Positions 25,894-52,001 of a DNA stretch of 64,000 nt are shown here, piece after piece. The position numbers and the translations under genes were made by a program. The DNA is taken from sequence record PP496436.1; one strand, written 5' to 3'. A model generated the notes under the pieces. It did not search any database. It saw only the letters and a program-made list of their open reading frames with translations, and was not told the origin of the DNA. Every line of letters starts with the position of its first letter. The stretch's first letter is position 1.

Positions 25894-26222
25894 TATTTGG
25901 TTTCTCCTGCTACTGACTCGATGGCAATGATCTCTGCACCGATGAGCAGGCTCTTCAGCCATTCTTCACCACGTTCCTCTTCGTCCTCGATTCGGACGTC
26001 TCCCATCATAATGAATGGGCAGTCATTGTGCGTCTCGAGCTTGTCAAAGACTGTGTTTACGGCGGCGTCGATAACATCCCAGCCGGTGCAGTTGCCCCCG
26101 ATCTTTACTTGCATCTCGGCGCGAAGCAATCCCGATGCGAAGGTCAATATAACGGTTTGGGTAACCTTGCCGCCGAACATTGCGAGAAAAGATCCGAGCT
26201 GTTCGTGATCATAGTTCAACAT
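25893..26222 (-). CDS. Hypothetical protein
   Basis: 109 aa, translationally coupled to its neighbours. Confidence 0.65.
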   Translation of the reverse strand: MLNYDHEQLGSFLAMFGGKVTQTVILTFASGLLRAEMQVKIGGNCTGWDVIDAAVNTVFDKLETHNDCPFIMMGDVRIEDEEERGEEWLKSLLIGAEIIAIESVAGETK

Positions 26223-27046
26223 TAGTCTGTCCTCTTGATATTACCGGGTAGGGTGTAGGACCACGGCTTGACATAATCTGCCGGGCGGGTGTAGCCTATC
26301 AGGTCTTCACCTTCGTAAGGGCCATACTTCCATGGGTCAGTAATCTCTGCGCGTTCAAACCCGATGGACTCGTATAGCTTGATCGCACCTTCGTTGTCCG
26401 GGTCCACGTTGAGATGATGGGGCAAACCTTGGGTAAGTTCCCAAGACAGCAGGAATTCCAGCATGCCTGTGGCAACACCGCGACGGCGGTAATCAGGGTC
26501 AACGCTGATCTCCTTGACAAAGCACGCGTCCACCTTCTCGCTGTCCTCGTCTTCTTTGAACATCACAACGTCCATCAGCCCAACGACCTTGTTGTGCGCG
26601 GTCACGGTCACCCGTATCTCTTCCTGATCCGGAATATCCCCGCTCCAGCCATTCCATCTGGCCATGGTCACGGTGTACAGATTGTGTTGCCCGTCGTGCT
26701 TGGGACTGTGCACCTGATGCAGTGCCCGTGCATTCTTCAACTCCATCTTGGCGCTGGGCTTGATGACCGGTAATTCCAGATGTTTGATTTCCTTTTCAAG
26801 CATGATACCAATCTCGGAGTCTTTCGCTTTCTTGTCTTTGATGGTGGCTCGGTACACTGTGTCTGTGTCCGTGTTGTAAACACCCACCTTATCCGTCATC
26901 ACCGTAATAGACGGCACAGCGGACCAGATGTACTCTTTGCAATGAGCTTTATCCGGGAATGCGAAGCCAACGGACTTGCCGTCTACAATGACCAGCCACG
27001 GGCAATGGCCGGGATGCGGAAACCGAAGGATCTTTTGTGTGGGCAT
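26222..27046 (-). CDS. GNAT-family acetyltransferase (C-terminal domain) with N-terminal extension
   Basis: ISVDPDYRRRGVATGML and VDPDNEGAIKLYESIGF. Confidence 0.85.
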   Translation of the reverse strand: MPTQKILRFPHPGHCPWLVIVDGKSVGFAFPDKAHCKEYIWSAVPSITVMTDKVGVYNTDTDTVYRATIKDKKAKDSEIGIMLEKEIKHLELPVIKPSAKMELKNARALHQVHSPKHDGQHNLYTVTMARWNGWSGDIPDQEEIRVTVTAHNKVVGLMDVVMFKEDEDSEKVDACFVKEISVDPDYRRRGVATGMLEFLLSWELTQGLPHHLNVDPDNEGAIKLYESIGFERAEITDPWKYGPYEGEDLIGYTRPADYVKPWSYTLPGNIKRTD

Positions 27047-33176: not shown

Positions 33177-34655
33177 ATGAAATCTGTAGCCGTTGACTAC
33201 CAAAAGATAGCCAAGGAATGCCAGTGTACCGAGCTGCCTTCTAAGGTAAGAGTTACGCGTGCACGGGTCTATCCAAACTTGAGGACGTGCCTACTCTTCC
33301 TCAAGTACGATGCCAAAGGCGATCTGGTGCAAGCCGAGATCACTGCGCCGTACGACACTTCCACCGAGCCAAAGGTGCGTGTGCTCAAGCACCCGGACAA
33401 GAAGTCCGACTTCCTTTCATTATATAGAGCGCTGATCCGCCATCAGATCATACCCGAGTCTATTCCGAAGAAAGGTAACGGGATTGCACCGACGCTGGAG
33501 GTAATCGGCACACTGGTGAGCCTGCTGCCGGAACGGGATGTCGAAACCTTCCGAACCCTGACCCCGGCCATCCAGACTGGCAGCGTCATGTACGTCCCTC
33601 TGGTTACGTCCCGGCCAATGCCCATGGTGCAACACTGGATACCCGTTGACCAGCATTCAGAGCTGGGCATGATCGAGCTGGTCGATACGGATAGCAAGCC
33701 TTTCCTTAATCAGTGGGTCAACAGGTTGAGCAACACCGCCACCGGTTATGTGATCTACACCCCGGAAGGCTCACACGGTCAGGAACTCGCCTGCTTCCGT
33801 GTGCCCAATGTGCAAGGAGAGGAACTGTGCGTGGTCAAGAAGGTGGACTTCACCCTTACCGTTGCTCGCACCCTCAAGCCGGTACTGACCGTCTCCACCA
33901 AGAGTACGCGTGCCGTATCCCGCATTCCCCTACCCCACTATCTGATGCTGCGCAATCACCACATCAAGGTTGGCACGGTTATTTCCCTGCGGCGTAACGA
34001 CCGAGGTGGGTTGGTGTACCATGAGACGGTGGCAGAGGAAGGGATGACACCTCTGCCACTGTGCCCACATTGCCATAGTGGATCTGTGCTGCGAAGTAGT
34101 AGCAATGACGTGTACTGCAATAACGATTCATGCCGAGGCCTAGCCATCGTGCGACTTCGCTACATCTTGAACAACAAGCTGGACGTCAAGTACCTGAGTC
34201 AGAACAAGGTGACGGCGTTGGTCAACGACAAGCAGGACCTGTTCAGCTTGCTCAAGACACCGACTCACCTATTGCGGCACAGAGCGGGCTTCGGTGCACG
34301 TACGGTGGATGCGCTGGAAGAGAAGCTGAACACTATCGCCGGTCTTCCACTGCACACGCTGGCCGAGATGTCCTGCGCTTTCTACAACGTGGGTGTGCCC
34401 CCGCTGGATGAGATGGTGTTCAAGAAGATCTTTTCCGTGATGTCGCTTGACCACCTGAAAGCACTGCCCTCCACCGGTAAGATGTACAGCCAGTTGCTCG
34501 ACATCGAAGGTATCCGCAACAACCGCGCAGTGGCTTTCCTCGCTGGTTGGCCTGCATTTCAACAGTGGATGATAGATCTTAACGCTGCCCTACAGTCTCG
34601 TAGCGCAATCTCCTCCACGGTAAATAACCCGAAACAAATTCGAGGTGTTAAATGA
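33177..34655 (+). CDS. Degenerate NAD-dependent DNA ligase-like protein lacking the KxDG adenylation motif
   Basis: OB-like VDFTLTVARTLKPVL..IKVGTVISLRR, C4 finger CPHC..VYCNNDSC, HhH-like GFGARTVDAL and IEGIRNNRA. Start re-assigned to ATG 33177 (GGAG RBS). Confidence 0.7.
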   Translation: MKSVAVDYQKIAKECQCTELPSKVRVTRARVYPNLRTCLLFLKYDAKGDLVQAEITAPYDTSTEPKVRVLKHPDKKSDFLSLYRALIRHQIIPESIPKKGNGIAPTLEVIGTLVSLLPERDVETFRTLTPAIQTGSVMYVPLVTSRPMPMVQHWIPVDQHSELGMIELVDTDSKPFLNQWVNRLSNTATGYVIYTPEGSHGQELACFRVPNVQGEELCVVKKVDFTLTVARTLKPVLTVSTKSTRAVSRIPLPHYLMLRNHHIKVGTVISLRRNDRGGLVYHETVAEEGMTPLPLCPHCHSGSVLRSSSNDVYCNNDSCRGLAIVRLRYILNNKLDVKYLSQNKVTALVNDKQDLFSLLKTPTHLLRHRAGFGARTVDALEEKLNTIAGLPLHTLAEMSCAFYNVGVPPLDEMVFKKIFSVMSLDHLKALPSTGKMYSQLLDIEGIRNNRAVAFLAGWPAFQQWMIDLNAALQSRSAISSTVNNPKQIRGVK

Positions 34656-35416
34656 ACAATCAAAACAGAACTCGTATCGCTGTGCTTGTCGGCGGCGGTC
34701 TGGACTCACATGCGTACATGGTATTGAAAGCCGACCAGCCTCAGACAGACTTCATTCATGTGGACTACGGCCAGCGGGTTGCAGTAGCCGAGAGAAACGC
34801 CGTGTTGCAAATGGCTGAGAAGCTGGGCATTGCCCGCAGCCGGGTGTACACGCTGATCTGCAACAAGAAGAATCACATGCGCAAGGTCAATGACGGTGTG
34901 GGTGTGTTGTTTGGCACCGGCCCGGTCGAGATGGACAATGCGTTTGTTAAGGGGCGTAACCTGTTCCTGATTCAGAAGGCCATCGAGCTGGGCTACGGTC
35001 ACGTGCACCTGACGCTGACCCAAGAGCGTGGCCGGATGTTCCCCGATGCCGATCTGGCATTCGTCCAGCTGGTGGACAACCTGATGCACCGCAGTTATGA
35101 CGTGAGGGTGTCCGCACCCTACATCATGGAAGACAAACACCGGGTGATGTTCAAGGCGTATCGGCACTGTCCCGAGTTCATCGATATGTCTTTCACGTGC
35201 TGGGTAGGTCCTTATGTGGAATGCGGAACGTGCCCGCACTGCTACAAGAAGGAAAAGATTCGAGCCGAGATGATCGTTGAGAAGATTGAATACGATCTCA
35301 GCAAGGATGAACGTGAGGCGCAGTGGGAGCAAGTCAAGGCAGGCTACGGCGACGCGTTGAAGCCCGCTGAGACCATCAACATGAACATTCAGGTTGTTGA
35401 CGGGGAAATGAAATGA
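34652..35416 (+). CDS. queC: QueC-like PP-loop ATPase (paralogue 1)
   Basis: GGGLDS, VDYGQR, FVKGRN, FPD, SFTCW..ECGTCPHC. Confidence 0.8.
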   Translation: MNNQNRTRIAVLVGGGLDSHAYMVLKADQPQTDFIHVDYGQRVAVAERNAVLQMAEKLGIARSRVYTLICNKKNHMRKVNDGVGVLFGTGPVEMDNAFVKGRNLFLIQKAIELGYGHVHLTLTQERGRMFPDADLAFVQLVDNLMHRSYDVRVSAPYIMEDKHRVMFKAYRHCPEFIDMSFTCWVGPYVECGTCPHCYKKEKIRAEMIVEKIEYDLSKDEREAQWEQVKAGYGDALKPAETINMNIQVVDGEMK

Positions 35417-36174
35417 ACAAGTTCTTAGGTTGGTTCAAGCGTCTGCTGGGTAAGGAGCAAAAGGCGGTAACGATGACAATGACCGACGCCAGTGGCAAGT
35501 TGGTCACCATTCATATACCTAAAGGTGCTGGGGTTGAGTACACCTTGTCGAAGTCGGGTGCCCACTTGAACGTCTCGGTCAAGGACGACATCTTCGTATT
35601 GAGCACGAACGGTGCTGGAGGCGGTGGGGGTGGCCGCGGTAGATCCAAACCTGGTGGCCCCGTCCATCCGCCCGTGCATCCGCGCCAAACCGTCCCAGTG
35701 GGTCCAGGCGCCCCGAACATGGGTTGCGCTGGGGACGCACCGAGTGGAGCAGGTGTAACGTCGCCAGTGGGCGCTCAAGCTTCGTTCCCTATCGGTGCCC
35801 GAGCCACTGTTTCTGGTGGTGGCCGCGTTGGTGGTCTGGCGGGTGACGGACGGGAACACAGAGAACTCGGAGGTGCACCCGGTCCCGGCGGAGATAGCTT
35901 CGTGCCCTCTCCAATCCGTAGTAGTGACCGAGCCTATCGCATCCGCGGTCTGTACTACGTCATTACGACTCGAAAGCTTACAGGTGAGGAGTACCCGACC
36001 CACGAACTTCTGCACTGGGGCCTTCGAGACATAGAACTCATGGGCAAGTTCTCAACGGTCCGTGAAGCTATCGACGAACTCAAGAGTAAGCTGGGTATCG
36101 TGTTAGACGATATTACGGACTATCAGGTTGACTCCATTCCCAAACGAATGTGCAAACCACCGCACAAATCTTGA
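35413..36174 (+). CDS. Gly/Pro-rich hypothetical protein
   Basis: Amphipathic N-terminus MNKFLGWFKRLLG and GAGGGGGGRGRSKPGG. Overlaps the queC stop. Confidence 0.6.
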   Translation: MNKFLGWFKRLLGKEQKAVTMTMTDASGKLVTIHIPKGAGVEYTLSKSGAHLNVSVKDDIFVLSTNGAGGGGGGRGRSKPGGPVHPPVHPRQTVPVGPGAPNMGCAGDAPSGAGVTSPVGAQASFPIGARATVSGGGRVGGLAGDGREHRELGGAPGPGGDSFVPSPIRSSDRAYRIRGLYYVITTRKLTGEEYPTHELLHWGLRDIELMGKFSTVREAIDELKSKLGIVLDDITDYQVDSIPKRMCKPPHKS

Positions 36175-36212
36175 GCGGGTAAATGGCTCGCAACTAATCC
36201 GGAGACACTAGA

Positions 36213-37031
36213 ATGACCACTACACCCCCGAAGATTCTTGTCGCATTCAGCGCTGGCACAGATTCAACCACTGCGGCCTACTACTATCGCAAGCTCGGCT
36301 ATCAGGTAACGCTGGCCGTGTTCGATGACGGCGCATGCAACGATCCGCTTGACCCTCTGTACGATCCGAACAAGCCGAAGGACTTGACCAACTTCTCGGA
36401 TGAGTTCTACGATTACGTACGGATTCACCAAGAGCATACGGAAGGTCATCTGCAGTTCGACTTCGTGGAGATTCGTTATCCGCAACTCGCATTGCTGGAA
36501 GCCAATAAGACGGCCAAGCCCGGTCGGGACAATGCGGCAGCAGCAGAGGCTGACGGCTTGGGCTTCTGGGTCGGCTTCAAGGGCCTGATGGCAATGTTGC
36601 TGATGAGCCACGGCGCCGCCAATGGTTACGAGGCAGTAGTCTTCGGCCACATGCCGTACAACAACCATTACGAAGATGAGCTGCCCCAGAACTTCGAGCT
36701 GCTGCGTCAGTACATGGTTACGGCCTATGGCAGCCGAGTGGAAATTCCTCAGATCTACCACCCGTTCTATCGACCTAATTTCGATACCAAGGAAAAGGTT
36801 ATTGAGCTGGCGCAGGCAATCGGCGTGCCCTTGCGAGATACCTATTCGTGCCGCCGAGGTGAAGTAGAAACCCGAGGCATCCTCCTGCCACTTCTGCGTG
36901 GCGGTAAATCCAACTACGTGAGCCCCACCTACCGCTGGAAGCATTGCGGTACGTGTGAGAACTGTGTCGAACGCAAGCGAGCCTTCGCGGCGCTGGGCAT
37001 GAAAGATCCTGCCCCTTATATGGAACATTGA
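36213..37031 (+). CDS. queC: QueC-like PP-loop ATPase (paralogue 2)
   Basis: FSAGTDST, HPF...TKEKVI, TYSCRRG, HCGTCENCVERKRAF..GMKDPAPY. Confidence 0.8.
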   Translation: MTTTPPKILVAFSAGTDSTTAAYYYRKLGYQVTLAVFDDGACNDPLDPLYDPNKPKDLTNFSDEFYDYVRIHQEHTEGHLQFDFVEIRYPQLALLEANKTAKPGRDNAAAAEADGLGFWVGFKGLMAMLLMSHGAANGYEAVVFGHMPYNNHYEDELPQNFELLRQYMVTAYGSRVEIPQIYHPFYRPNFDTKEKVIELAQAIGVPLRDTYSCRRGEVETRGILLPLLRGGKSNYVSPTYRWKHCGTCENCVERKRAFAALGMKDPAPYMEH

Positions 37032-37032
37032 T

Positions 37033-38022
37033 ATGGCCCTTTCAACCTGGCCGCTGACCGAAGGTGAACTCGGTCAGGGCCTCGTCAACGAACTGAATCG
37101 TACCAGCAAGGCGCTGGTGAACCGGAGTATGTGGTCTTTGCCATTGCTCCGGCGTTTGTTTTATCGGCGCACCGAGATTGGTGTCCCGGAGCTACTCCAC
37201 GTCTGTACCAGCATTCATCGGGGCAAGACTTACTTCTGCCTGTTGGTGAACTTCCGAGACGTGGTGATGGGCAATCCCGACCAGTATGGCTGGGATCTGG
37301 CGGGCCGCTGGTTGTTCTACGACGTTGACCTGCTGGACACCCCGCCGTTCAAAGCGGTGAAGAAGTCCATTGAGTCCCGTGCCACCAAGACCGAAGTGTC
37401 GTACGGTCAGGCTTTCCTCCCTTACGAGAAGAGTGATGAGGAATACGTCAAGTCCCTCAAGGGCAACTACAAGCCCCACATCTTCGGCGAGAAGTCCAAG
37501 CAGTATCGCGTCTTATCGTACTTCGGGCTGGCAGCGGTAGCCCCCTTCGCTCAAGCTCTGATGTGCTTCGGCATTCAGCGCGCCGAAAGGTTTATGGCCG
37601 AAGGGCAGAACGATGTCCTCCCCGAGTTGTACGACCTGCCACTGCAACTGGCGGGGCTCGGCAATGTCTCGAACACCCGCATCGGCTGCGTGACCATTGA
37701 AGTCGAAGGTACGATGGTAGGTGCTATCAGCATGTATGCTCAAGGTGCACTGGGCGACGCGGACATGCTGTATCTGCACGAGATCCTCATCGACCCGGAC
37801 CCCAAGTGGAAGAGCTTGTCGCTGGCTACTCTGCTGCACATTCATGCCGTCCTGTACTATCGCCGATCCCTCCAGAAAGACATAGTGTTCAACCTGGGCT
37901 ATAACTTCGCCGATGGGTATCAAGGTTACAAGGATGTCTTCCGTCCCAACGCCAACGCCTTCAACGTGTACACCGAGATGGACACCGAGCCCGGCGTACC
38001 ACTGTCCTGTTTCAAGGGGTAA
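37033..38022 (+). CDS. FemAB-like / dupli-GNAT acyltransferase paralogue 1
   Basis: SDEEYVKSLKGNYK, VGAISMY, SLSLATLLHIHAV, FNLGYNFADGYQGYKDVF. Confidence 0.55.
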   Translation: MALSTWPLTEGELGQGLVNELNRTSKALVNRSMWSLPLLRRLFYRRTEIGVPELLHVCTSIHRGKTYFCLLVNFRDVVMGNPDQYGWDLAGRWLFYDVDLLDTPPFKAVKKSIESRATKTEVSYGQAFLPYEKSDEEYVKSLKGNYKPHIFGEKSKQYRVLSYFGLAAVAPFAQALMCFGIQRAERFMAEGQNDVLPELYDLPLQLAGLGNVSNTRIGCVTIEVEGTMVGAISMYAQGALGDADMLYLHEILIDPDPKWKSLSLATLLHIHAVLYYRRSLQKDIVFNLGYNFADGYQGYKDVFRPNANAFNVYTEMDTEPGVPLSCFKG

Positions 38023-38025
38023 GAC

Positions 38026-39027
38026 ATGTACACTCCGTATTCCCAAAACAGCCTTATGCAGTCGATCCCTCTGGATGACCAAGGTACATTCGCCCATCCA
38101 CCGTACACGATGGAAGGAGAGTTCACCGACGTGTGGACGAATCCCAGCCTGTACGGGTTTGTTAGCTTGTTGAACGGTCAGAGCAATAGCCGGGCATATC
38201 GAGACTGGATGACCACCCACAATCTTCCAGCCCTGTTCCTCGGTCCGCACCATGAAGACAACTTCTGGTTTGAATTCAGCACTGGTCTCGATTCCAACTG
38301 CACGCTGGATTACAACGAGATCAACGTCCAAGGCAACCTGCAGGACTTCCTTGGGAGATTGACGTCATCTCGCCGTCGCTCCGTGCTCAAGGCAAAGGAA
38401 ACGGATACAATGATCCACAAGGCAGGCTCGGTAGCCAACTTCAACCTGTATCATCCGGTAGAGGGTAGGCTGTATAGTCTGACCGTGATTCACGAACGCC
38501 GGGTGATGAAAGATATTTCCGAGTTTATCGAATCGAAACTCTGGAGTATGAAGCATACGCCTACTGACCTCACGTACGGTGCATTCACCACTCTGATGGA
38601 CTACATCCGGTTGAAGCAGCGAGATGACACGCCGCTGGGCCACCGGTTGCGCAACGTACAGCTCTTGGTTATCCGAGATGAACGCTCCGGGTTTATCGTG
38701 TCGGTACACCTGGTGGCGATCACCACGTTGAAAGATGAGTCCATGAACCCCATCAAGACGTACATGCACTCCTTCGCACGCATCACTGTTCTCCCTGCAC
38801 GCATCGCCTTACTTGCGTTGATCAAGGCGGTTCAAGAGTTAAACGTCACCAGTCAGTATGCGTCCCGTGCACTGGCGAAGATCGACTATCTTGATGTGAG
38901 CAACGTGGTGCTGTCCGAGCGAGAGCAGTACAAGTCGGACTTCTTCACCGGCAAATGCCAAGTGCGTGCGTGGGCATCCCCGGCGCTGCTGGAACGGCAG
39001 TTACCTTTCGTCACGCCGATCCCGTAA
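38026..39027 (+). CDS. FemAB-like / dupli-GNAT acyltransferase paralogue 2
   Basis: NLQDFLGRLTSSRRRSVLKA ... EQYKSDFF. Confidence 0.45.
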   Translation: MYTPYSQNSLMQSIPLDDQGTFAHPPYTMEGEFTDVWTNPSLYGFVSLLNGQSNSRAYRDWMTTHNLPALFLGPHHEDNFWFEFSTGLDSNCTLDYNEINVQGNLQDFLGRLTSSRRRSVLKAKETDTMIHKAGSVANFNLYHPVEGRLYSLTVIHERRVMKDISEFIESKLWSMKHTPTDLTYGAFTTLMDYIRLKQRDDTPLGHRLRNVQLLVIRDERSGFIVSVHLVAITTLKDESMNPIKTYMHSFARITVLPARIALLALIKAVQELNVTSQYASRALAKIDYLDVSNVVLSEREQYKSDFFTGKCQVRAWASPALLERQLPFVTPIP

Positions 39028-39081
39028 CTCTGTAAATGATGGGAACAGCCCCACCATCACTTCATCTCTAGGGTAGTTCCC

Positions 39082-40134
39082 ATGCAAGACTTCGATAAGA
39101 TAATGATCGATAGTAGTTTGACATCCAATCTGGTGTACGCAGGGTTGGGTAACTTGATCACGCCCCGCGCACTTGACCTGCTGATCGAACATCAGGCTGC
39201 ACTGGAAAACGTATACGCCAATCTGGAAACGGCCTATCAGATTACCCCACCCTTCCCCTGTGAAGCTGCATTCAATTCCCCTGACAAAGATCCTGTGCTG
39301 GTCGCCGACTATCTGAATGCTACTCCCGCCATCCGTTGCGGAGAGCTGGCTGGATTCGAGGCAAAGCCCGGCAGTTACTACCATGCGCCCGCCGCTGGTA
39401 TCTCCCCGGAACATCGCATTGACGTACGTGGTATGTCTTTGCGTGAGTTCGACCACTATCTGGTTGAGCGTAAGGAAGTATCCCGTATCACTACCAATCT
39501 GGTGGCCGACAAGTTCCGCTGTGAGACGCATGTGTACAAAGTGGATGAAGATCATATCCTGATCCATGACGCCGAACGAGTTGGGATCAGCCAGACGGAC
39601 TTCCGCCGCATGTGGGCGCAGACCCGCCGCCGGGAAATCGCTGAAAACTATCTGCAGTACATGCCCATCGAAGATTCCGCCAAGGATGATCAGGTGGTGC
39701 GACTGATCAACGAAGACGTAGCACGGGTGTTCGCCCAGAACGTCGACTACGACCGCATGATTCCGCCCGAGCTGATCTTCGATGGTCAGGGCAAGCCGGT
39801 GCTGACCGTGCTGAAAGATTGCAACGCCAAGGTATTGGGCATTGGTGTGTACGTCATCTACAAGTCAGCTGACCCAGAGCATGACAGCGAACTGCACTGG
39901 CGTGGCGCTTTCTACGATCACGAAGATCCTCGCGTAGCATCCATGGGCATTGAACACGCTCTGGTTGCCAGCGCACTGCACACAGCGTACGCCTGCAACG
40001 CGGTCCTCTATCTGACCAAGGCACCTAAGTCCGTGTGCGACGCATGGAAGACGGAAGTGCACCAAGGTTACGGTCTGGTCCGTAATGCGATGCCGGAACT
40101 GTCTGACACCCCTTACATTCTGGCTATCCAGTAA
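39082..40134 (+). CDS. FemAB/ATE-like dupli-GNAT acyltransferase paralogue 3
   Basis: EFDHYLVE; KVLGIGVY..WRGAFYDHEDPRVASMGIEHAL..VLYL, which resembles the aminoacyl-transferase C-terminal GNAT. Confidence 0.45.
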   Translation: MQDFDKIMIDSSLTSNLVYAGLGNLITPRALDLLIEHQAALENVYANLETAYQITPPFPCEAAFNSPDKDPVLVADYLNATPAIRCGELAGFEAKPGSYYHAPAAGISPEHRIDVRGMSLREFDHYLVERKEVSRITTNLVADKFRCETHVYKVDEDHILIHDAERVGISQTDFRRMWAQTRRREIAENYLQYMPIEDSAKDDQVVRLINEDVARVFAQNVDYDRMIPPELIFDGQGKPVLTVLKDCNAKVLGIGVYVIYKSADPEHDSELHWRGAFYDHEDPRVASMGIEHALVASALHTAYACNAVLYLTKAPKSVCDAWKTEVHQGYGLVRNAMPELSDTPYILAIQ

Positions 40135-40167
40135 ATAGCCGGTAACTCCATCCATTGAGGTACTTCC

Positions 40168-42252
40168 ATGAAATCCGTGAACCCCATCTTCAAACACGTT
40201 CCCCAGTTCGACTGGCCTGTCATTCCCCGTGCGCAGTGGGAAGAGATCATCAAGGGAAAAGAGCATGTGATGTTCGACTCCTTCTCGCAGCTCGCTCAGG
40301 TGCTGGCTATCCCGGTGAGCAGTTACCAGTTCTACTTCGAAGATGGGTCCACGTTGTTCGCCGGTCCCGAAGCAACCTTCACCGCCGCCCCCTATCCGTT
40401 GTATCAGGATCTGGAATTCGTCCTGACCCCGGATGAGACGTTGGTGCCGGGTCTTGCACTGGATACCAAACCGTGGGGCCTGTACACCGACGAATGGGTG
40501 GACAACTACGAAGGTGCGGACAAGGAAGACATCGGCAACAAGACCGGGTTCGAATTCATTCCGCTGTCGGACGCTTTGAAACTGGTGGTCCTCAACACGG
40601 AGACCATGCAGCTCCAGTACACTGCAATCGAGAGCTTCACGTACGACGGCGTGACTTACGTATACCTGCTGGCCGATGGCGTGTGCTGGGTACTGGCGGG
40701 CAAGTCCGGTGGTCTGGTTGCCAGCGAGCATGACAAAGGCGCGGCGTTCATCATGGTGTCCCATCCCGAGTTCGCCGGGTGCAGCGTAGACAACATGTAC
40801 CCAAGTGAGTTCGGTGAAGCGGAAGCGACGTTCTACGTTCAAGACGAGGAACACAATTACCTGGACGCGGCTAACCGCATCTTCGAGGAAGCCAAGGACG
40901 TAGGCGCTGGCACGTTCCTGACCATTGAGACCGGTGATGGATTGCCGACCGCGCTGGCGTACAACCTGCGGTACAGTGATGTGGCCCACGTTAATCTGCC
41001 GATGCACAACATCCACCAGTTCACTTCTCTTCACGTACGACTGGGTGAGACGCCTAACTTCTCCGAGGCCCCGGAAGCGTGCCGCATGAAAGAGGTGATG
41101 GAGTATCTGGCGGACCCTGAGTCCCCGGTAGATCATTACTGGTCGGCCATCATGGTACTGGAGAAGAACTTCCCCGGTTTCGCCGACGCCCTGAAAGACT
41201 CCAGTGTCCCGACCCGTGACATCGTGCACTCCAAACAGGCGTTCAGCTTGGAGATCGATCGCCAGTTCGGCAAGGAAGTGGCAAGCAAGATCGGGCTGAA
41301 CACTGGCGTATTCGCTCAAGTGAAAGACCGTGATGAATGGCTGGTACGCAAACACGAGTTCCCTACCGATAAGGTGGCCGTCAAGTACAACACCAAACAC
41401 TTCATCGGCATCTTCGACAAGGACGAGGTATCGAAGTCCATCAACATGTGGCTGGCTGGTCAACCCGGAGAGTCGCTGATGATCGAAGAGTACTTCGGTG
41501 AGGGCAATCAGGAATTCAACCTGTGCTACGTGATCAACGAAGATTTCGTGCAGCCGACGCTGTTCCTGTGCGAAGTCAACAAGATCCTCGGCAATGACAC
41601 CGGCGGCAAAGGTGGCAACACGCTGGCCTGCCATGATGCTCGTATTAACAAGTACCCTGAGTTCTTCGAGCCGGTCAATAATGCGCTTGCTAACCTGCAT
41701 GAGCACGTGGAAGGTGTGAAGGGCTGGGTTGACCTGAGCTTCATGGTTCGCGACGGTATCCCATACTTCACAGAGTGGTGCATTCGCATCGGCTGCTCCA
41801 ACAACGCCACCATCGTGCGCCAGATGGAGACCCCGCTCGACGTCCTGTTGACTAACGTGGTCAACAAGGTGCATACCGAGCTGTCTTGGAAACACTCCAT
41901 GTCTGTCAGCGTGGACATCTACAGCATGCCGCTATCCGCAGGCAACGACGCCAACATGCAGTTCACCGACTCGCTGACCACTCCGGTAGAGATGGTGTCC
42001 CCGCTCAATCTGGAACTGGCGGCGGAGAGTTTCTTCGACCCGATTGATTCGGCCTGGAACGCGGTGTACGACGGCTACATCGTCGAGGCGTATAATCGCT
42101 ATGGCACCGTCTCGGGGTACTCCACCAACTGGAACTTCGCCTGCAATGCGGCGTATAATCACTTGAAAGATCAGTCGGTGTTGTACGGAGCGTACCGCGA
42201 AGCGCCTGCCCACCATGACCCACTGACTCTGTTCCCTTTCCTCAAGGCGTAA
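40168..42252 (+). CDS. ATP-grasp amide ligase, PurD-like C-terminal half with a long N-terminal region
   Basis: LMIEEYF..QEF..EVNKILGNDTGGKGGNT..GWVDLSFMV..PYFTEWCIRIG aligns with PurD IEEFL..QDHKR..DTGPNTGGMG..VIEFNCRFG. Confidence 0.7.
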   Translation: MKSVNPIFKHVPQFDWPVIPRAQWEEIIKGKEHVMFDSFSQLAQVLAIPVSSYQFYFEDGSTLFAGPEATFTAAPYPLYQDLEFVLTPDETLVPGLALDTKPWGLYTDEWVDNYEGADKEDIGNKTGFEFIPLSDALKLVVLNTETMQLQYTAIESFTYDGVTYVYLLADGVCWVLAGKSGGLVASEHDKGAAFIMVSHPEFAGCSVDNMYPSEFGEAEATFYVQDEEHNYLDAANRIFEEAKDVGAGTFLTIETGDGLPTALAYNLRYSDVAHVNLPMHNIHQFTSLHVRLGETPNFSEAPEACRMKEVMEYLADPESPVDHYWSAIMVLEKNFPGFADALKDSSVPTRDIVHSKQAFSLEIDRQFGKEVASKIGLNTGVFAQVKDRDEWLVRKHEFPTDKVAVKYNTKHFIGIFDKDEVSKSINMWLAGQPGESLMIEEYFGEGNQEFNLCYVINEDFVQPTLFLCEVNKILGNDTGGKGGNTLACHDARINKYPEFFEPVNNALANLHEHVEGVKGWVDLSFMVRDGIPYFTEWCIRIGCSNNATIVRQMETPLDVLLTNVVNKVHTELSWKHSMSVSVDIYSMPLSAGNDANMQFTDSLTTPVEMVSPLNLELAAESFFDPIDSAWNAVYDGYIVEAYNRYGTVSGYSTNWNFACNAAYNHLKDQSVLYGAYREAPAHHDPLTLFPFLKA

Positions 42253-42255
42253 TCC

Positions 42256-43416
42256 ATGAGCACTCCATTCCAAGAGTTCACCCTAGAGGGGTGGATTCAA
42301 CATATGAATCAGGATCAAATCTGGAAGCGGTACGCCAACGATCATCCTAACAGGGTTGAGTTCAGCCCTGTTTGGCGTGACGAGATGTATCGGTTGATGG
42401 TACAGTTCAAAGAGCTGCTGCCGATGTCGTTCTCCAATCCGGTGTACGGCTTCACCGAAGGCTATCTGGAAGGGTTCGGACTCCAGCCCTTCTACGGCGA
42501 TGATCCTTTCAATCCGATGGTTCAGCCTCTTAGCCATCCTCTGGTTCACGTGGGCTTCCCACTCACACTGGACGAGATCGTAGCGAGCGTGCGGGACTGG
42601 CAGTCCCTGAGCGATCACCTGGGGCGTCCGCAACTGGTCGATACATTCGAGCCGGTTTCACTGCTAGCGCGCAACCTGTACGAGCCTAACGCGCTGCTGG
42701 CCGTACGGAACAAGGAAGAGATCGTGATGAACGGGGGCACGCCCGCGAACTACTTCCTCTGGCTGAATAGCCCGGTCACCGAACTCAAAGACGACTTCGA
42801 CGTTTATCTGGCCAGCCTGACCAAGAAGCGCCGCTACAAAGTGAAGCAGGCGTTGGCGACGGTAGGCACCGAAGAGAATCCCCGGATCAGCGTCAGCACC
42901 GGGTCTCGTTTCGGCGAAGGGCTGTTGTCCGATCAGGTGGACAGCATCCTTGCGACGTTCGAAGATCCAGTGGACATCGAGTGCATGCTTCTTCAGTTGC
43001 TATTCGGGGTTGCAACCTGCAATACCCATCCGCATCTTGTCGATCTGGTGTGTGCAGACCAGCAGTTGGGGATCTTCATCAAGCGTAACGGCCACACGAT
43101 GAACTTCCTCTACAACCGCGACCCGGACAACCGCGCTGATTCAGGCATAAACCTGCTTACCCAGTACGTGCGCCATCTGCACATGAACCGACCGGAAGGC
43201 GTTATGTACGTGGACCCGACATGCCGATATCGGCCTGACGAGGACAGTATGAACACCTACAAGCGGGTGATCACCAACGAGAACCGGTATCACCCAATGC
43301 CGTTCGTCTCGGCTGACCCTGCGCACATCGAAGGTGTGCTTACCCCGGCGTTCATTGCAGGCCATTGGCAGATGTCGGCGTCCAACGGACCGGCCAACCC
43401 CGAGATGATGGAGTAA
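42256..43416 (+). CDS. FemAB-like / dupli-GNAT acyltransferase paralogue 4
   Basis: DFDVYLASLTKKRRYKVKQAL ... MNTYKRVI. Confidence 0.6.
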   Translation: MSTPFQEFTLEGWIQHMNQDQIWKRYANDHPNRVEFSPVWRDEMYRLMVQFKELLPMSFSNPVYGFTEGYLEGFGLQPFYGDDPFNPMVQPLSHPLVHVGFPLTLDEIVASVRDWQSLSDHLGRPQLVDTFEPVSLLARNLYEPNALLAVRNKEEIVMNGGTPANYFLWLNSPVTELKDDFDVYLASLTKKRRYKVKQALATVGTEENPRISVSTGSRFGEGLLSDQVDSILATFEDPVDIECMLLQLLFGVATCNTHPHLVDLVCADQQLGIFIKRNGHTMNFLYNRDPDNRADSGINLLTQYVRHLHMNRPEGVMYVDPTCRYRPDEDSMNTYKRVITNENRYHPMPFVSADPAHIEGVLTPAFIAGHWQMSASNGPANPEMME

Positions 43417-43418
43417 CC

Positions 43419-44366
43419 ATGGCAAAGTCCAAAATGAGACGGTTGGCGATCAACCACATCTATGACTTCTACCCGTTGTATCAGGTGATGTACGGGCGTG
43501 GCATGGAGACCAAAGCGTTCGAGGTATCCAAGTTCGCCAAGATGGTTATGGACTTCGAAGCCTCGACCAGTACTCGCCGGAAGTGGGACGTGCTGGAGCC
43601 CTTCAGCGGTATCAGTGAACACGAACACTTCTTCGCTGCGACCGGCCTGAACATCGAGCACTACACCGGCATGGACATTGTGGTTCCAGATGGGGCCACG
43701 AACGTCATTCAAGGGGACATCATCACCGACACCCTTCCGTTTCACGTCAACGCAGTGTTCGCCTTCTACTACAGCTTGCAGAATGTACGGGACGCGGCGA
43801 CCGGCATGCACACGCGGGCCAAGCTGGTGGAGTTCTTCGACAACATCATTGGTCATCTGCAAGTAAATGCGAACAAGAGCCGTATGCCCGCAGTGTTCGC
43901 GTTCCACCTTGACCAGCCTGAAGATCCTAATTACTATCTGACGTCCCGTGCCGACGTTGGAGGTGAACAGTCATGGACTGCACCCGCGTGTGGTCTGCTC
44001 GGGCAGTGGGTCAAGTGCAAGCCGACTGACACTCTGGAAGTCAAGTGCAATCTGGATACCTGGTACAACCGCGTGCAGTGCACAGCGTATGATCAGGCAG
44101 AGGACATTCAGATTCTGGTAAATGGGAAAGTAACCGCTGTCGTAGACATCGAGCAGCCGTTCACCCATCGGGTCTGGACCGAGCATGAGGTCATCGATAT
44201 CCTGCGGGGTCTGGACTACAATCTGCACTTCCACATGTACAACGGCACCCTCTCCAATTACGACTTCTTGATGACCCGGCTGGACGACAAGCCCGTTCCC
44301 GGCGATGAAGAGTCTAATACTAATCAGATGACAACTGATATGTTGGTTGTCGTTAATCCGAGGTAA
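43419..44366 (+). CDS. Class I SAM-dependent methyltransferase-like paralogue 1
   Basis: VLEPFSG, YTGMDI, IQGDI, VFAFYYSL. Start re-assigned to MAKSK. Confidence 0.6.
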   Translation: MAKSKMRRLAINHIYDFYPLYQVMYGRGMETKAFEVSKFAKMVMDFEASTSTRRKWDVLEPFSGISEHEHFFAATGLNIEHYTGMDIVVPDGATNVIQGDIITDTLPFHVNAVFAFYYSLQNVRDAATGMHTRAKLVEFFDNIIGHLQVNANKSRMPAVFAFHLDQPEDPNYYLTSRADVGGEQSWTAPACGLLGQWVKCKPTDTLEVKCNLDTWYNRVQCTAYDQAEDIQILVNGKVTAVVDIEQPFTHRVWTEHEVIDILRGLDYNLHFHMYNGTLSNYDFLMTRLDDKPVPGDEESNTNQMTTDMLVVVNPR

Positions 44367-44368
44367 GC

Positions 44369-45286
44369 ATGGCTAAGCCCAAGGTTCCAACCAAGACGAT
44401 CCCCACGTTGTACCAAGACTGGGGATTGTACAGCGCCATCTGCGAACTGCCGCAGGAGACGATGCTGATGATGTCGCGCTTCGTGGCAGACCGAACCATT
44501 GAGCACGCTGAGCGTATCGATCAGGTAATGGTCGAGATCATGGAACCCTTCAGCGGCCCAATCCCGTATTACGAGCCAGACATCCGCAGCTTCCTGACCC
44601 GCGCTAAGCTTGATCTGTACACGTACGATCACGTCGAATACCTGGATCACGGCAAACTGTCGGAAGACAACGGCATCATCATCGGTGACATTACCACCAT
44701 CGATCTGAAGCAGAAGTACGACGTCATCTACGGCAGTTACGGCAGCTTGGCCTGCCTGCTGCTGGATCAGACGCACAACAAAGCGTACGAGAAGTCGCAC
44801 GCGGCGCTGGTCAACATCCGCAACCACCTGAAACCCAACGGCATCTTCATCCTGAACGCCAACGGGTCCAGTGAGAGCCTACTGAACAACCTGCTGAACT
44901 CCGATGAGCCGGATCAGGAGATTCGCGTTCGTCCGGGATCGCAGCTTGGCAAGAAGTTCGGCATCAAGCCGGACAGCAACGCGCTGCTTCGCTTCACCTA
45001 TCACGTGGAGTACGACCGACGCACCACCTGCACCATGTGCCACTACAGCGATATGGTGCTGTCTGTAAATGGGGTTGACATCCAGCGCTGGGAGGTGGAA
45101 TCCCCGACGTATCTTGCTCCGCTGGACGAACCCGAACTAATTCGAATGGCAGGTATGGCGGGTTTCAATCTGGACAACACTGAGTTCTACGGATTGGACA
45201 CCACCGGTTATCCTGCCTTCTTCAAAATGGATACGGTCTGCGACGGGTCATGGTCACCCGCCGAGTTCGTAGTCTTTCGCACCTAA
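44369..45286 (+). CDS. Class I SAM-dependent methyltransferase paralogue 2
   Basis: IMEPFSG, IGDITTIDLKQKYDVIYGSYGSL, NIRNHLKPNGIFIL, ELIRMAGMAGF..FYG. Confidence 0.75.
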   Translation: MAKPKVPTKTIPTLYQDWGLYSAICELPQETMLMMSRFVADRTIEHAERIDQVMVEIMEPFSGPIPYYEPDIRSFLTRAKLDLYTYDHVEYLDHGKLSEDNGIIIGDITTIDLKQKYDVIYGSYGSLACLLLDQTHNKAYEKSHAALVNIRNHLKPNGIFILNANGSSESLLNNLLNSDEPDQEIRVRPGSQLGKKFGIKPDSNALLRFTYHVEYDRRTTCTMCHYSDMVLSVNGVDIQRWEVESPTYLAPLDEPELIRMAGMAGFNLDNTEFYGLDTTGYPAFFKMDTVCDGSWSPAEFVVFRT

Positions 45287-45296
45287 CGAGGTTCCT

Positions 45297-46532
45297 ATGA
45301 GCGTTATCATCCCCACCGTAGCGATGGAGAGTGGTCAGCCAGACATGATCATTCAAGGCTGTTCCACTGGTCGCGTCTCTATGGCCGAGCCTAACGAGAG
45401 CGCCAAACCCAAGTCTTCCAAGAAGCTGTACGAACGTGAAGACCTGATGGCGTACGACAGCGAGTCGGAGCACTGGCAGAAGCAGTTGGCCCGCCGCTAC
45501 GCTCACCATGGTGAGATGGTCGGTGTGTTGAACAACGTCGAGGTGGTGCCGGAAGCCACCTACCAGAACTTCGACATGAAGATCACTCCGTACACCGCGC
45601 AGTTGATGGATCAGAACGACCCCAACTGCCCGATTCGTCTGCAGTACATGCCGACCAACAAAGAGCTGGAGTCGATTCAGCGTGAAGAGACCATGCACAA
45701 CGAGCTGGGCGAGGAAGAGGACACCGTCCCCGGTACCTCGGTCGTGCACCGCTACCCGCGCCGCGTCTTGTTCCTGACCACCACCCAGTGCGCTAGCTTC
45801 TGCCGTTACTGCACCCGTGCACGCATCGTCTCTCACGGCGGTGAAGCGGCTATCACCAAGAAGCACCTGGACGCCAGCATCGACTACATCGCCTCGAACA
45901 AGGACATAGAAGACGTGTTGCTGTCCGGCGGTGACCCGTTCATCCTGCCAGACAACAAGCTCGACGAGATCCTCGGTCGTATCCGCGCCGAAGCACCTCA
46001 CGTTCGCTTCCTGCGTATTGGTAGCCGACTGCCGGTACAGATGCCGACTCGTATCACTCCAGAGCTGTGCGAGATTCTGGAACGCCACAACGTCAACATG
46101 GTCAACATCCATGTGAACCACCCGAAAGAGGTCACCCCACTGCTGGCCTCCCGGATGAAGATGTTGCGCAAAGCTGGCGTGATGATCGGTAATCAGGCGG
46201 TCCTCCTGAAAGGCGTGAACGACTCCATCGAGGTGATGACCGAGCTGTGCTTGCGCATGGTCGAGATGGGTGTGCGTCCGTACTACGTCTACTCCAACGA
46301 TCCGGTTGCGCAGGCCGCACACTTCACCGTCTCGCTCCGTGATATGCTGGACATCAACGAAGGCATGCGTGGCTTCCTGTCCGGCCCGGCAATGCCCACC
46401 TTCGTGGTGGACGGCGTGGGTGGCTTGGGCAAGATGCCCGTGCAGAAAGAGTATGTGACAGTACTGGGGAGTGGTAAGATCTGGGCCACCAACTTCGAAG
46501 GAATGACCACTCGCATGCCCCATCTGGAGTAA
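45297..46532 (+). CDS. kamA: Lysine 2,3-aminomutase (radical SAM, PLP)
   Basis: HRYPRRVLFL, CASFCRYCTR (CxxxCxxC), LLSGGDP, RIGSR, HVNHPKE, NQAVLLKGVND, PYYVYSND, PTFVVDGVGGLGKMP. Confidence 0.93.
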   Translation: MSVIIPTVAMESGQPDMIIQGCSTGRVSMAEPNESAKPKSSKKLYEREDLMAYDSESEHWQKQLARRYAHHGEMVGVLNNVEVVPEATYQNFDMKITPYTAQLMDQNDPNCPIRLQYMPTNKELESIQREETMHNELGEEEDTVPGTSVVHRYPRRVLFLTTTQCASFCRYCTRARIVSHGGEAAITKKHLDASIDYIASNKDIEDVLLSGGDPFILPDNKLDEILGRIRAEAPHVRFLRIGSRLPVQMPTRITPELCEILERHNVNMVNIHVNHPKEVTPLLASRMKMLRKAGVMIGNQAVLLKGVNDSIEVMTELCLRMVEMGVRPYYVYSNDPVAQAAHFTVSLRDMLDINEGMRGFLSGPAMPTFVVDGVGGLGKMPVQKEYVTVLGSGKIWATNFEGMTTRMPHLE

Positions 46533-46595
46533 GCGGCACAGACACTCCCTAGTTCCAGTGTACAAGCTTCAAACGCCCCATTTGCGCTAGGTCCT

Positions 46596-51308: not shown

Positions 51309-52001
51309 ATGGCGAGCACGCTGGGCATTAAAGAAGCACAAGACATACTGGGGCTGGAACCGGGCGCTGACCTTGCCGACGTCAAAAAGGCGGTGCGCAA
51401 GCTGTGCCAAAGGTTCCACCCGGACAAGGAAGGCGGTGACCCTGAGATGTTCCGACGTGTACGGGAAGCTGGGGAGTTGCTGGAGGAGATTCTGGCGGAT
51501 CACGACATCATCCCGAATGAGGAATACCTGGACGCGCTCAACTACGTCATCACCATGCTCGGCCAGAAGTACGTGGCGGCTGAGATGGACGGGATGAATG
51601 CCAGGCGTCGTGTCGCGATCAAGATGACCAACGACGTTTTCAGCTTCCACAACCTGCAGCAAGCGGCCTTCGCAGCGGCAGCCCCGCCCAGTGCAGAGTC
51701 CTACGTGTTGAACGAACTCGAACAGGAGATCAAAGTCAACATCGATGAGTTCAATTCATCTATCGAACGGCACTCTGTTCAGGGTAAAGGGCTGCGCATG
51801 TTGATGCAAAACATGAAAGCGCCGAAGATGGCCTACTCCGTGTGGCAAGACGCTCGGGATTCCTTGGCGCAGGCTATTCGCCAGCAACGCAACAACATCC
51901 GCATGGCGAAGATCCGGCTGCAAGCACTGGAAGAGTTCGAAGCCATCCAGCACAAGCGCAAGCAGGAAGCCATTCGTCTGGCCCATGGGGTGCGCTCATG
52001 A
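51309..52001 (+). CDS. J-domain (DnaJ-like) protein
   Basis: ILGLEPGADLADVKKAVRKLCQRFHPDKEGGDPEMF, with intact HPD. Confidence 0.85.
   Translation: MASTLGIKEAQDILGLEPGADLADVKKAVRKLCQRFHPDKEGGDPEMFRRVREAGELLEEILADHDIIPNEEYLDALNYVITMLGQKYVAAEMDGMNARRRVAIKMTNDVFSFHNLQQAAFAAAAPPSAESYVLNELEQEIKVNIDEFNSSIERHSVQGKGLRMLMQNMKAPKMAYSVWQDARDSLAQAIRQQRNNIRMAKIRLQALEEFEAIQHKRKQEAIRLAHGVRS

Follow-up and report, generated by a model that had tools for sequence, protein, structure and literature searches.

We found that an open reading frame (ORF) at positions 45297-46532 (+) of a 64,000-nucleotide (nt) stretch of phage DNA encodes an intact L-lysine 2,3-aminomutase of the KamA clade, an assignment that is well supported by sequence and is the only one in our whole reading of which this can be said. 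The stretch (hereafter the window) matches Pseudomonas phage vB_PpuM-Illi-2 (PP496436.1) without differences, record coordinates being higher than window coordinates by 124,000. Illi-2 is a cultured lytic myovirus (jumbo phage) from Estonia with a complete genome of 201,178 bp; its host, Pseudomonas putida KT2440/PaW85, is a harmless laboratory strain. The ORF is Illi2_00194, deposited as "hypothetical protein"; we abbreviate Illi2_00183-Illi2_00194 as g183-g194. The enzyme adds one more member to a known family, and what is new is its recruitment into a phage operon of deazaguanine and ligase genes. We propose, with confidence about evenly balanced, that a functional KamA derived from a proteobacterial kamA supplies beta-lysine to be joined through an amide to a 7-deazaguanine, probably for hypermodification of DNA. 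The original prediction had read the gene as an intact lysine 2,3-aminomutase in a phage; this interpretation holds up overall, and the deazaguanine/ligase operon adds a probable purpose to it.

The ORF encodes 411 amino acids (aa), starts with ATG 10 nt past the stop codon of the preceding gene, and carries a GAGG Shine-Dalgarno sequence 9 nt upstream. Its product matched both Pfam Radical_SAM and LAM_C and passed the NCBIfam subfamily model TIGR00238 (274.9 bits, cutoff 199.2), and residues 89-406 align to Clostridium subterminale KamA (PDB 2A5H) with an E-value of 4.7e-80 and 43.5% identity, a match to the family far beyond chance. In this alignment the [4Fe-4S] cysteines C165, C169, and C172 of CASFCRYCTR correspond to C125, C129, and C132, R174 of the same motif to Arg134, D335 of YSND to Asp293, and D372 and K379 of FVVDGVGGLGK to Asp330 and to Lys337, which binds pyridoxal 5'-phosphate (PLP). 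The S-adenosylmethionine (SAM)-binding motif SGGD is retained at residues 210-213. The three motifs singled out by the original prediction are therefore real and were correctly read, and all catalytic and lysine-binding residues of Clostridium KamA are present, as are all the features that define the family (CxxxCxxC, SGGD, the PLP lysine, and a hidden Markov model (HMM) score above cutoff). The structural Zn site of the clostridial enzyme (Cys268 plus a C-terminal Cys cluster) and its C-terminal oligomerization domain are lacking: Cys268 is replaced by Ser310, as in the bacterial clade to which the phage protein belongs, and the C-terminal ~50 residues are absent, as in its closest bacterial relatives, so that the chain ends ~5 residues beyond the position matching residue 364 of the 416-residue 2A5H chain. 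Purifying selection acts on the gene, with a dN/dS of 0.12 in the comparison of Illi-2 with Peetri, the most divergent sister phage. An ORF of 447 aa on the other strand (45222-46565, -) covers the whole gene; we read this ORF as an artifact of the 56% GC content rather than as a gene, given that the + strand has strong homology and is under purifying selection.

The original prediction had also argued for lysine rather than glutamate as the substrate, and several lines of evidence agree. R174, D335, and D372 are the counterparts of Arg134, which we take to bind the substrate carboxylate, and of Asp293 and Asp330, which we take to bind the epsilon-amine. Ruzicka and Frey are said to have described in 2007 that the glutamate enzyme has Lys and Asn in place of the two lysine-binding Asp residues, both of which are kept in the phage protein. 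None of the curated aminomutase equivalog models was passed: the best score was for AblA (TIGR03820; 320.5 bits, cutoff 525.4), followed by glutamate 2,3-aminomutase (302.6, cutoff 650), arginine 2,3-aminomutase (292.6, cutoff 600), and EpmB (223.5, cutoff 369.3). TIGR03820 represents the AblA/clostridial type, and the proteobacterial catabolic clade would probably also fall below its cutoff.

Stronger support for lysine specificity comes from the bacterial orthologs. A search of 5.8 billion proteins returned thousands of KamA homologs, and the top non-phage matches (59-67% identity, ~393 aa) were from Lysobacter and many Burkholderiales. In Undibacterium and Rhodoferax the genes are ordered AsnC / kamA-kdd-(357 aa)-kamD-kamE-thioesterase-kce, with kamA heading the operon; kamA-kdd-kamDE-kce is the classical route of beta-lysine degradation. 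Taking one genome per species, we examined the 80 best bacterial loci, whose KamA proteins share 57-68% identity with that of the phage. The kdd gene adjoins kamA in 69 of them, and among the 51 loci spanning 15 kb or more, 45 contain kdd, kamD, kamE, the thioesterase, and kce; homologs of the phage operon genes occur in none of the bacterial kamA loci. This clade therefore provides the beta-lysine on which KamDE acts, and by sequence the phage enzyme belongs closely to it. The bacterial KamA genes nearest to the Vibrio phage copies (Shewanella carassii, L095) and to the Pseudomonas phage copies (Lysobacter niastensis, L021/L096) are exactly those without kdd-kamDE-kce neighbors.

In Illi-2, KamA is the last of 12 co-directional genes (33177-46532, +) separated by gaps of -4 to 54 nt; sites resembling promoters or terminators are not in excess, and all 12 are under purifying selection (dN/dS 0.07-0.25). 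Two of these genes belong to the QueC family. The canonical QueC signature consists of SGGxDS, YxQxHxxE, VPxRN, and YPDC motifs and a Zn cluster (PMC13329287). The PP-loop ATPase g184 (34652-35416, +; Pfam QueC 5.6e-19) has GGGLDS, in which the first Ser is replaced by Gly, YGQRVAVAE, KGRN, FPDA, and the Zn cluster CGTCPHC, and it scored 62 bits against the NCBIfam QueC model, below the cutoff of 150. YGQRVAVAE conforms to Y/FxQ(x)5E without the His, the variant described for Cap9, and the best PDB match of g184 was Cap9 itself (9NTO, 1.1e-8; Bacillus subtilis QueC, 3BL5, 3.7e-5). All core features of the Cap9 type (this variant, the RN motif, the PP-loop, and the Zn cluster) are present. The operon partners of Cap9, the tRNA-guanine transglycosylase (TGT)-like Cap10 and a CD-NTase, were found in neither the Illi-2 operon nor its genome; g184 is not part of a cyclic oligonucleotide-based antiphage signaling system (CBASS), and by analogy it may share the Cap9 mode of action. 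The second gene, g186 (36213-37031, +), encodes a degenerate QueC-like protein (hhalign 92% to the canonical QueC of Vibrio phage GR11A) that retains the PP-loop SAGTDS and the Zn cluster and has lost YxQxHxxE, VPxRN, and YPDC. Beside the DNA polymerase gene, outside the window, Illi-2 also encodes a QueE-like radical SAM protein (phrog_2076, 1.6e-42) and FolE (GTP cyclohydrolase I, 3.8e-39). This block (PP496436.1 192957-197228; L010:4957-9228) includes a sliding-clamp-like 408 aa gene and small ORFs of 114, 129, and 193 aa, of which the 129 aa ORF has a counterpart at the same position in GR11A.

The genes between the QueC-like proteins and KamA include candidates for ligation and tailoring. 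The C-terminal half of g190 (40168-42252, +; 694 aa) resembles the ATP-grasp ligase PurD (NCBIfam purD 2.4e-7), and a PDB profile search matched three PurD structures, the best at 2.3e-5. The next gene, g191 (42256-43416, +), had no direct family match. Searching 1.84 billion representatives with a profile gave 75 distant relatives; 73 of these were scanned, with matches to Pfam Acetyltransf_6 in seven and to FemAB_like in two, which points to a FemAB/Acetyltransf_6-like protein of the Gcn5-related N-acetyltransferase (GNAT) fold. The adjacent g192 (43419-44366, +) and g193 (44369-45286, +) are paralogs of each other (hhalign 97%) and had no match in Pfam, NCBIfam, PHROGs, or a PDB profile search; their motifs, read by eye, would fit class I methyltransferases.

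The whole operon is kept in nine of nine P. putida phages of the genus. In the Vibrio phages GR11A and GR7B, whose proteins are 36-51% identical to those of Illi-2, the same arrangement lies between helicase and topoisomerase II genes, in the order LigA-like, ArcS-core, canonical QueC, QueC-like paralog, unassigned gene, g191 homolog, g190 homolog, KamA, and a small GNAT; QueC, the QueC-like gene, the g191 and g190 homologs, and KamA are common to the P. putida and Vibrio phages in this interval. The GR11A QueC is canonical (186 bits, cutoff 150), its ArcS-core protein matched Pfam DUF5591 (30.7 bits, cutoff 26) and NCBIfam ArcS (9e-11) and has the PC-x3-KPY motif, and both Vibrio phages carry FolE and QueE beside the polymerase. 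Two metagenomic contigs (L012 and L013) have g190-g191-g192-g193 and g188-g189-g190-g191 homologs between them with gene order kept. A third lineage is represented by a 231 kb IMG/VR jumbo phage contig (L020; IMGVR_UViG_3300028898_000109), in which a PurD-like ATP-grasp protein (purD 2.9e-22; 26% identity to the C-terminal half of the g190 homolog of L013), two unassigned genes, a SET-domain protein, KamA with every catalytic residue present, and QueE, 6 kb beyond KamA, lie within 12 kb beside gyrase genes.

The gene is rare cargo, as the original prediction had supposed: KamA matches occur in 19 of 50,697 phage records, 3 of which are bacterial contigs and 11 of which have this type of cluster. 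Homologs of g190 occur in exactly the 11 records bearing this KamA and, beyond them, in the two metagenomic contigs only. No additional loci came from IMG/VR or JGI metagenomes searched with g190 alignments, or from IMG/VR searched with a single KamA protein; a KamA alignment alone found one, L020. In a neighbor-joining tree without bootstrap, Illi-2 KamA groups with Lysobacter (68% identity), GR11A KamA with Shewanella (59%), and L020 KamA with a Clostridium/Chloroflexi group (49%). Because the three phage proteins branch with different bacteria, the tree suggests that KamA was captured separately by three phage lineages. The same activity was thus seemingly acquired three times into the same gene company, and this repeated capture is the strongest argument that the pathway needs beta-lysine itself.

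From these genes we infer the following coupling steps, their order, and DNA as the final target. KamA, acquired by the phage from a proteobacterial lysine-degradation kamA, would use its [4Fe-4S] cluster and a SAM-derived 5'-deoxyadenosyl radical to shift the alpha-amino group of lysine, bound to PLP, to C3, yielding beta-lysine; it would be the supply step of a phage-specific biosynthetic operon, serving neither catabolism nor elongation factor P (EF-P). Phage FolE and QueE, with host QueD, would produce 7-carboxy-7-deazaguanine (CDG). The CDG carboxylate would be adenylated by g184 and attacked, in a Cap9-like manner, by an amine other than ammonia; this amino group would belong to beta-lysine or to an intermediate that contains it. 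The ATP-grasp protein g190 would activate an amino-acid carboxylate (in the simplest case that of beta-lysine) towards a second amine, comparable to PurD with glycine, and the Fem/GNAT-like g191 and the paralogous g192 and g193 would then tailor the side chain. The product would probably take the place of guanine in phage DNA as a hypermodified base and protect against restriction.

There are two precedents for coupling a non-ammonia amine to a 7-deazaguanine. Cap9 adenylates CDG, which is then attacked by a protein N-terminal amine instead of ammonia to give an N-substituted 7-amido-7-deazaguanine (10.1101/2025.04.06.647259), and ArcS adds lysine to preQ0, including the free 5'-monophosphate (PMC11298593). 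The original prediction had beta-lysine consumed by the adjacent ligases; we infer the same, and this view gains weight because a PurD-like ATP-grasp protein accompanies KamA in three phage lineages. It had overlooked the 7-deazaguanine enzymes of the operon and genome, and these change the likely purpose of KamA. A more specific version of our proposal is tentative, and we would sooner expect it to fail than to hold in full: in Illi-2-like and GR11A-like phages, guanine would be replaced or decorated by a 7-amido-7-deazaguanine whose amide nitrogen bears beta-lysine, possibly extended or methylated, made by Cap9-like chemistry on a small-molecule amine, with kamA captured separately by the three lineages.

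A number of observations weigh against the proposed pathway. By HMM and motif checks Illi-2 has no canonical QueC, only the non-canonical paralogs, and QueD is not recognizable in its genome. The small ORFs of the FolE/QueE block have no QueD, QueF, or DpdA signature, and Illi2_00227 and Illi2_00229, beside FolE, likewise lack motifs of QueD and QueF; going by the annotation, the set of deazaguanine genes seems incomplete. Every deazaguanine-modified virus encodes a DpdA-type transglycosylase, of which the DpdA3 and DpdA4 types are detectable only by profile-profile methods (HHpred) (Hutinet et al. 2023). No DpdA/TGT-like transglycosylase is annotated in Illi-2, the cluster genes have no such Pfam or PHROG match, and tblastn and phmmer searches of all Illi-2 ORFs with Escherichia coli Tgt gave no match, although the DpdA3 and DpdA4 types are undetectable in this way. 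We considered the 408 aa gene adjoining QueE as a DpdA and rejected it as clamp-like. Five operon genes (g187-g189 and g192-g193) received no fold from family or profile searches, and the Fem-like assignment of g191 is transitive. AlphaFold2 models of g191 (4-sequence alignment; mean predicted local distance difference test score (pLDDT) 33.5) and g190 (3 sequences; 34.7) were unusable because of the few homologs. Since the operon lies inside a block of DNA-replication genes, adjacency does not prove shared chemistry. A KamA-like gene of the huge phage LR756500 has a different context (GATase/peptidase C26, another radical SAM protein, LRR, GT2), so phage KamA genes need not share one purpose. 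We found no literature report of unusual DNA in these phages.

Beta-lysine might instead be made for a product that has nothing to do with 7-deazaguanine, such as a beta-lysine peptide or a polyamine-like or peptidyl small molecule assembled by the ATP-grasp and Fem-like enzymes and serving, for example, to neutralize DNA charge in the capsid or as an inhibitor, with the QueC-like genes as mere neighbors in the replication region. The pairing of KamA with the PurD-like ATP-grasp protein, which is the most constant feature of these loci, would fit such a product, as would the lack of a transglycosylase in the Tgt searches of Illi-2 and the distance between QueE and KamA in L020. We nevertheless consider it unlikely: QueC-family genes lie within the same tight operon in two phage groups, QueE is encoded in all three lineages, and the Cap9-type active-site variant of g184 fits a CDG ligase that accepts an amine. 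The ArcS-core protein that opens the Vibrio phage cluster raises another alternative, in which KamA acts on lysine already attached to preQ0, either isomerizing an ArcS-type preQ0-Lys or resolving the adduct to archaeosine (dG+) as a RaSEA-like partner. In archaea, ArcS forms a complex with a radical SAM enzyme and transfers lysine to preQ0 (PMC11298593), and ArcS2 of phage nt-1 yields dG+; the nt-1 enzyme did so in E. coli without a radical SAM partner of this kind. No ArcS-like gene or PC-x3-KPY motif occurs anywhere in the Illi-2 genome, which also lacks a canonical QueC for preQ0 synthesis. The phage KamA keeps the full set of residues for binding free lysine, including both epsilon-amine Asp residues, and its 57-68% identity is to enzymes of free lysine; we regard a preQ0-Lys substrate as quite improbable.

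KamA could also be an auxiliary metabolic gene that acts in host lysine catabolism or in making the compatible solute N-epsilon-acetyl-beta-lysine (AblA/AblB-like). In favor of this, the donor genes belong to catabolism, AblA gave the best equivalog score, and a small GNAT follows KamA in GR11A and GR7B. That best score is far under the AblA cutoff, no GNAT adjoins KamA in the Pseudomonas phages, and the Vibrio phage GNAT, which we rejected as an AblB-like enzyme, had generic acetyltransferase matches only, with no AblB model among them. For catabolism, no kdd, kamDE, or kce homolog lies beside phage KamA and no bacterial kamA locus carries a homolog of the phage operon genes; either role would leave the conserved ATP-grasp/QueC-like operon unexplained, and we judge both to be very unlikely. 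Close to refuted is the idea that the enzyme, like EpmB, supplies (R)-beta-lysine for lysylation of EF-P and thereby boosts translation of polyproline proteins during infection. It shares the short architecture of EpmB, without the C-terminal Zn domain; identity to E. coli EpmB is 30%, EpmB is the outgroup in the tree, and the EpmB HMM score is well short of its cutoff. The original prediction had noted that no EpmA is encoded in the window, and this extends to the complete 201 kb Illi-2 genome, where tblastn with E. coli EpmA and EF-P gave only noise; phage KamA groups apart from EpmB and is not accompanied by an epmA/efp pair elsewhere in the genome. EF-P of P. putida is rhamnosylated on Arg32 by EarP, not lysylated (PMC5615199). 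With neither EpmA nor EF-P in the phage and a host EF-P modified in this other way, a role of phage KamA in EF-P beta-lysylation is all but excluded.

The proposed system combines features of several known ones. It shares its catalytic residues with catabolic KamA of the kamA-kdd-kamDE-kce type and with the clostridial enzyme, and differs in that the gene is in a lytic phage of an aerobe, lacks downstream catabolic genes, and ends a ligase-type operon. The 7-deazaguanine bases described in phage DNA are dPreQ0, dADG, dG+, dPreQ1, mdPreQ1, fdPreQ1, dDG, and dCDG (Hutinet et al. 2019, 2023). Like the phages that make them, Illi-2 has FolE, QueE, and QueC-family genes among its DNA-metabolism genes, and ArcS2 is found in Vibrio phages; the described pathways have no aminomutase, ATP-grasp ligase, or Fem-like transferase, whereas the Illi-2 operon has all three and Illi-2 has no recognized DpdA or canonical QueC. 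We found nothing in the literature that joins these components to phage deazaguanine pathways. Cap9 of type IV CBASS resembles g184 more closely than QueC does, sharing the Y/FxQ(x)5E variant, the GRN motif, and the Zn cluster, but it modifies the CD-NTase N-terminus together with the TGT-like Cap10 in a bacterial defense operon, whereas g184 is without both partners and its proposed acceptor is an amino acid. ArcS/RaSEA archaeosine synthase, as its pathway is described, likewise brings together lysine, preQ0, and a radical SAM enzyme; there, lysine is a transient nitrogen carrier, whereas in the phage it would be a retained building block. An ArcS core heads the Vibrio phage cluster, and ArcS is absent from the Pseudomonas phages.

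The nearest parallel in logic is the hypermodification of thymidine. Phages M6, ViI, and SP10, in work attributed to Lee and colleagues (2018 and 2022), reportedly append amino acids to 5-hydroxymethyl-2'-deoxyuridine (5-hmdU), after which radical SAM isomerases and PLP enzymes reshape them. Free amino acids are thus put on a modified base and then tailored, as we propose here, but the base is thymidine and installation is by a kinase and aGPT-Pplase; relatives of the M6, ViI, and SP10 radical SAM isomerases were absent from the KamA matches in the 50,697 phage records. To our knowledge, amino-acid hypermodification of DNA is known mainly for thymidine, and none of the eight known 7-deazaguanine derivatives of phage DNA carries an amino acid. 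If correct, our proposal would give DNA bases a new chemical class, with the first 7-deazapurine in DNA to be conjugated to an amino acid, and would show that a QueC enzyme of the Cap9 type can use a small-molecule amine. Lysine aminomutase has known roles in catabolism, in the synthesis of osmolytes, in antibiotics, and in EF-P modification, and would here gain an anabolic role. The practical interest of such bases would lie in DNA resistant to restriction and CRISPR. Should the link to DNA fail, this would still be a rare, conserved phage-encoded beta-lysine pathway. The paper on the P. putida phage collection mentions neither the KamA gene nor any DNA modification, and we found no report on phage KamA or on the Vibrio phages GR11A and GR7B.

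The remaining operon genes are less readily placed. The first, g183 (33177-34655, +), is 25% identical to a Vibrio phage gene annotated as ligA DNA ligase (L002:6719-8032). Pfam recognized no domain in it, including the adenylation domain; by our own reading it has a LigA-type Zn finger and a helix-hairpin-helix (HhH) region, and it might bind DNA as a partner of the modification enzymes. Elsewhere in the genome, Illi-2 and the Vibrio phage each encode a distinct NAD-dependent ligase of full length. Between the two QueC-like genes lies g185 (35413-36174, +), a Gly/Pro-rich low-complexity ORF with 4-nt overlaps that is kept among the Pseudomonas phages (dN/dS 0.22) and absent from the Vibrio phages. 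Three conserved genes follow g186 (g187, g188, and g189; 37033-40134, +), of which g188 and g189 have homologs in L013. A YL.SL..RR motif is common to g188 and g191. Comparisons by hhalign did not establish g187, g188, g189, g191, v51, and L12a as paralogs, the best result being a probability of 58% over a 29-residue motif (g188 against g191); that all of them are Fem-like is an unproven impression. The g192/g193 pair was also compared by hhalign with the 275 aa protein of L020, with a negative result. GC content is flat at ~0.56 over the operon and the remainder of the window; composition shows no sign of recent acquisition, and a recent transfer of the operon is unsupported by it.

Several further genes were observed in these phages. 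The SET-domain protein of L020 (9415-9843) lies directly upstream of KamA and has a homolog (E 4e-6) in GR11A (L002:2862-3272, -), ~5 kb upstream of the cluster; it might methylate a lysine-derived side chain. In the same contig, a gyrase B gene fragment (118-972) has a weak match to an intein splicing domain (30.5 bits, below the cutoff of 35.8). The thymidylate synthase of Illi-2 (PP496436.1 25956-27110; L007) has 384 aa, with a Pfam match spanning residues 33-377 for a 266-position model, and so contains ~100 residues of insertions. Near the operon in the window are a 274 aa GNAT acetyltransferase (26222-27046, -), with weak matches to aminoglycoside, streptothricin, and spermidine N-acetyltransferase models, and a DnaJ-domain protein (51309-52001, +).

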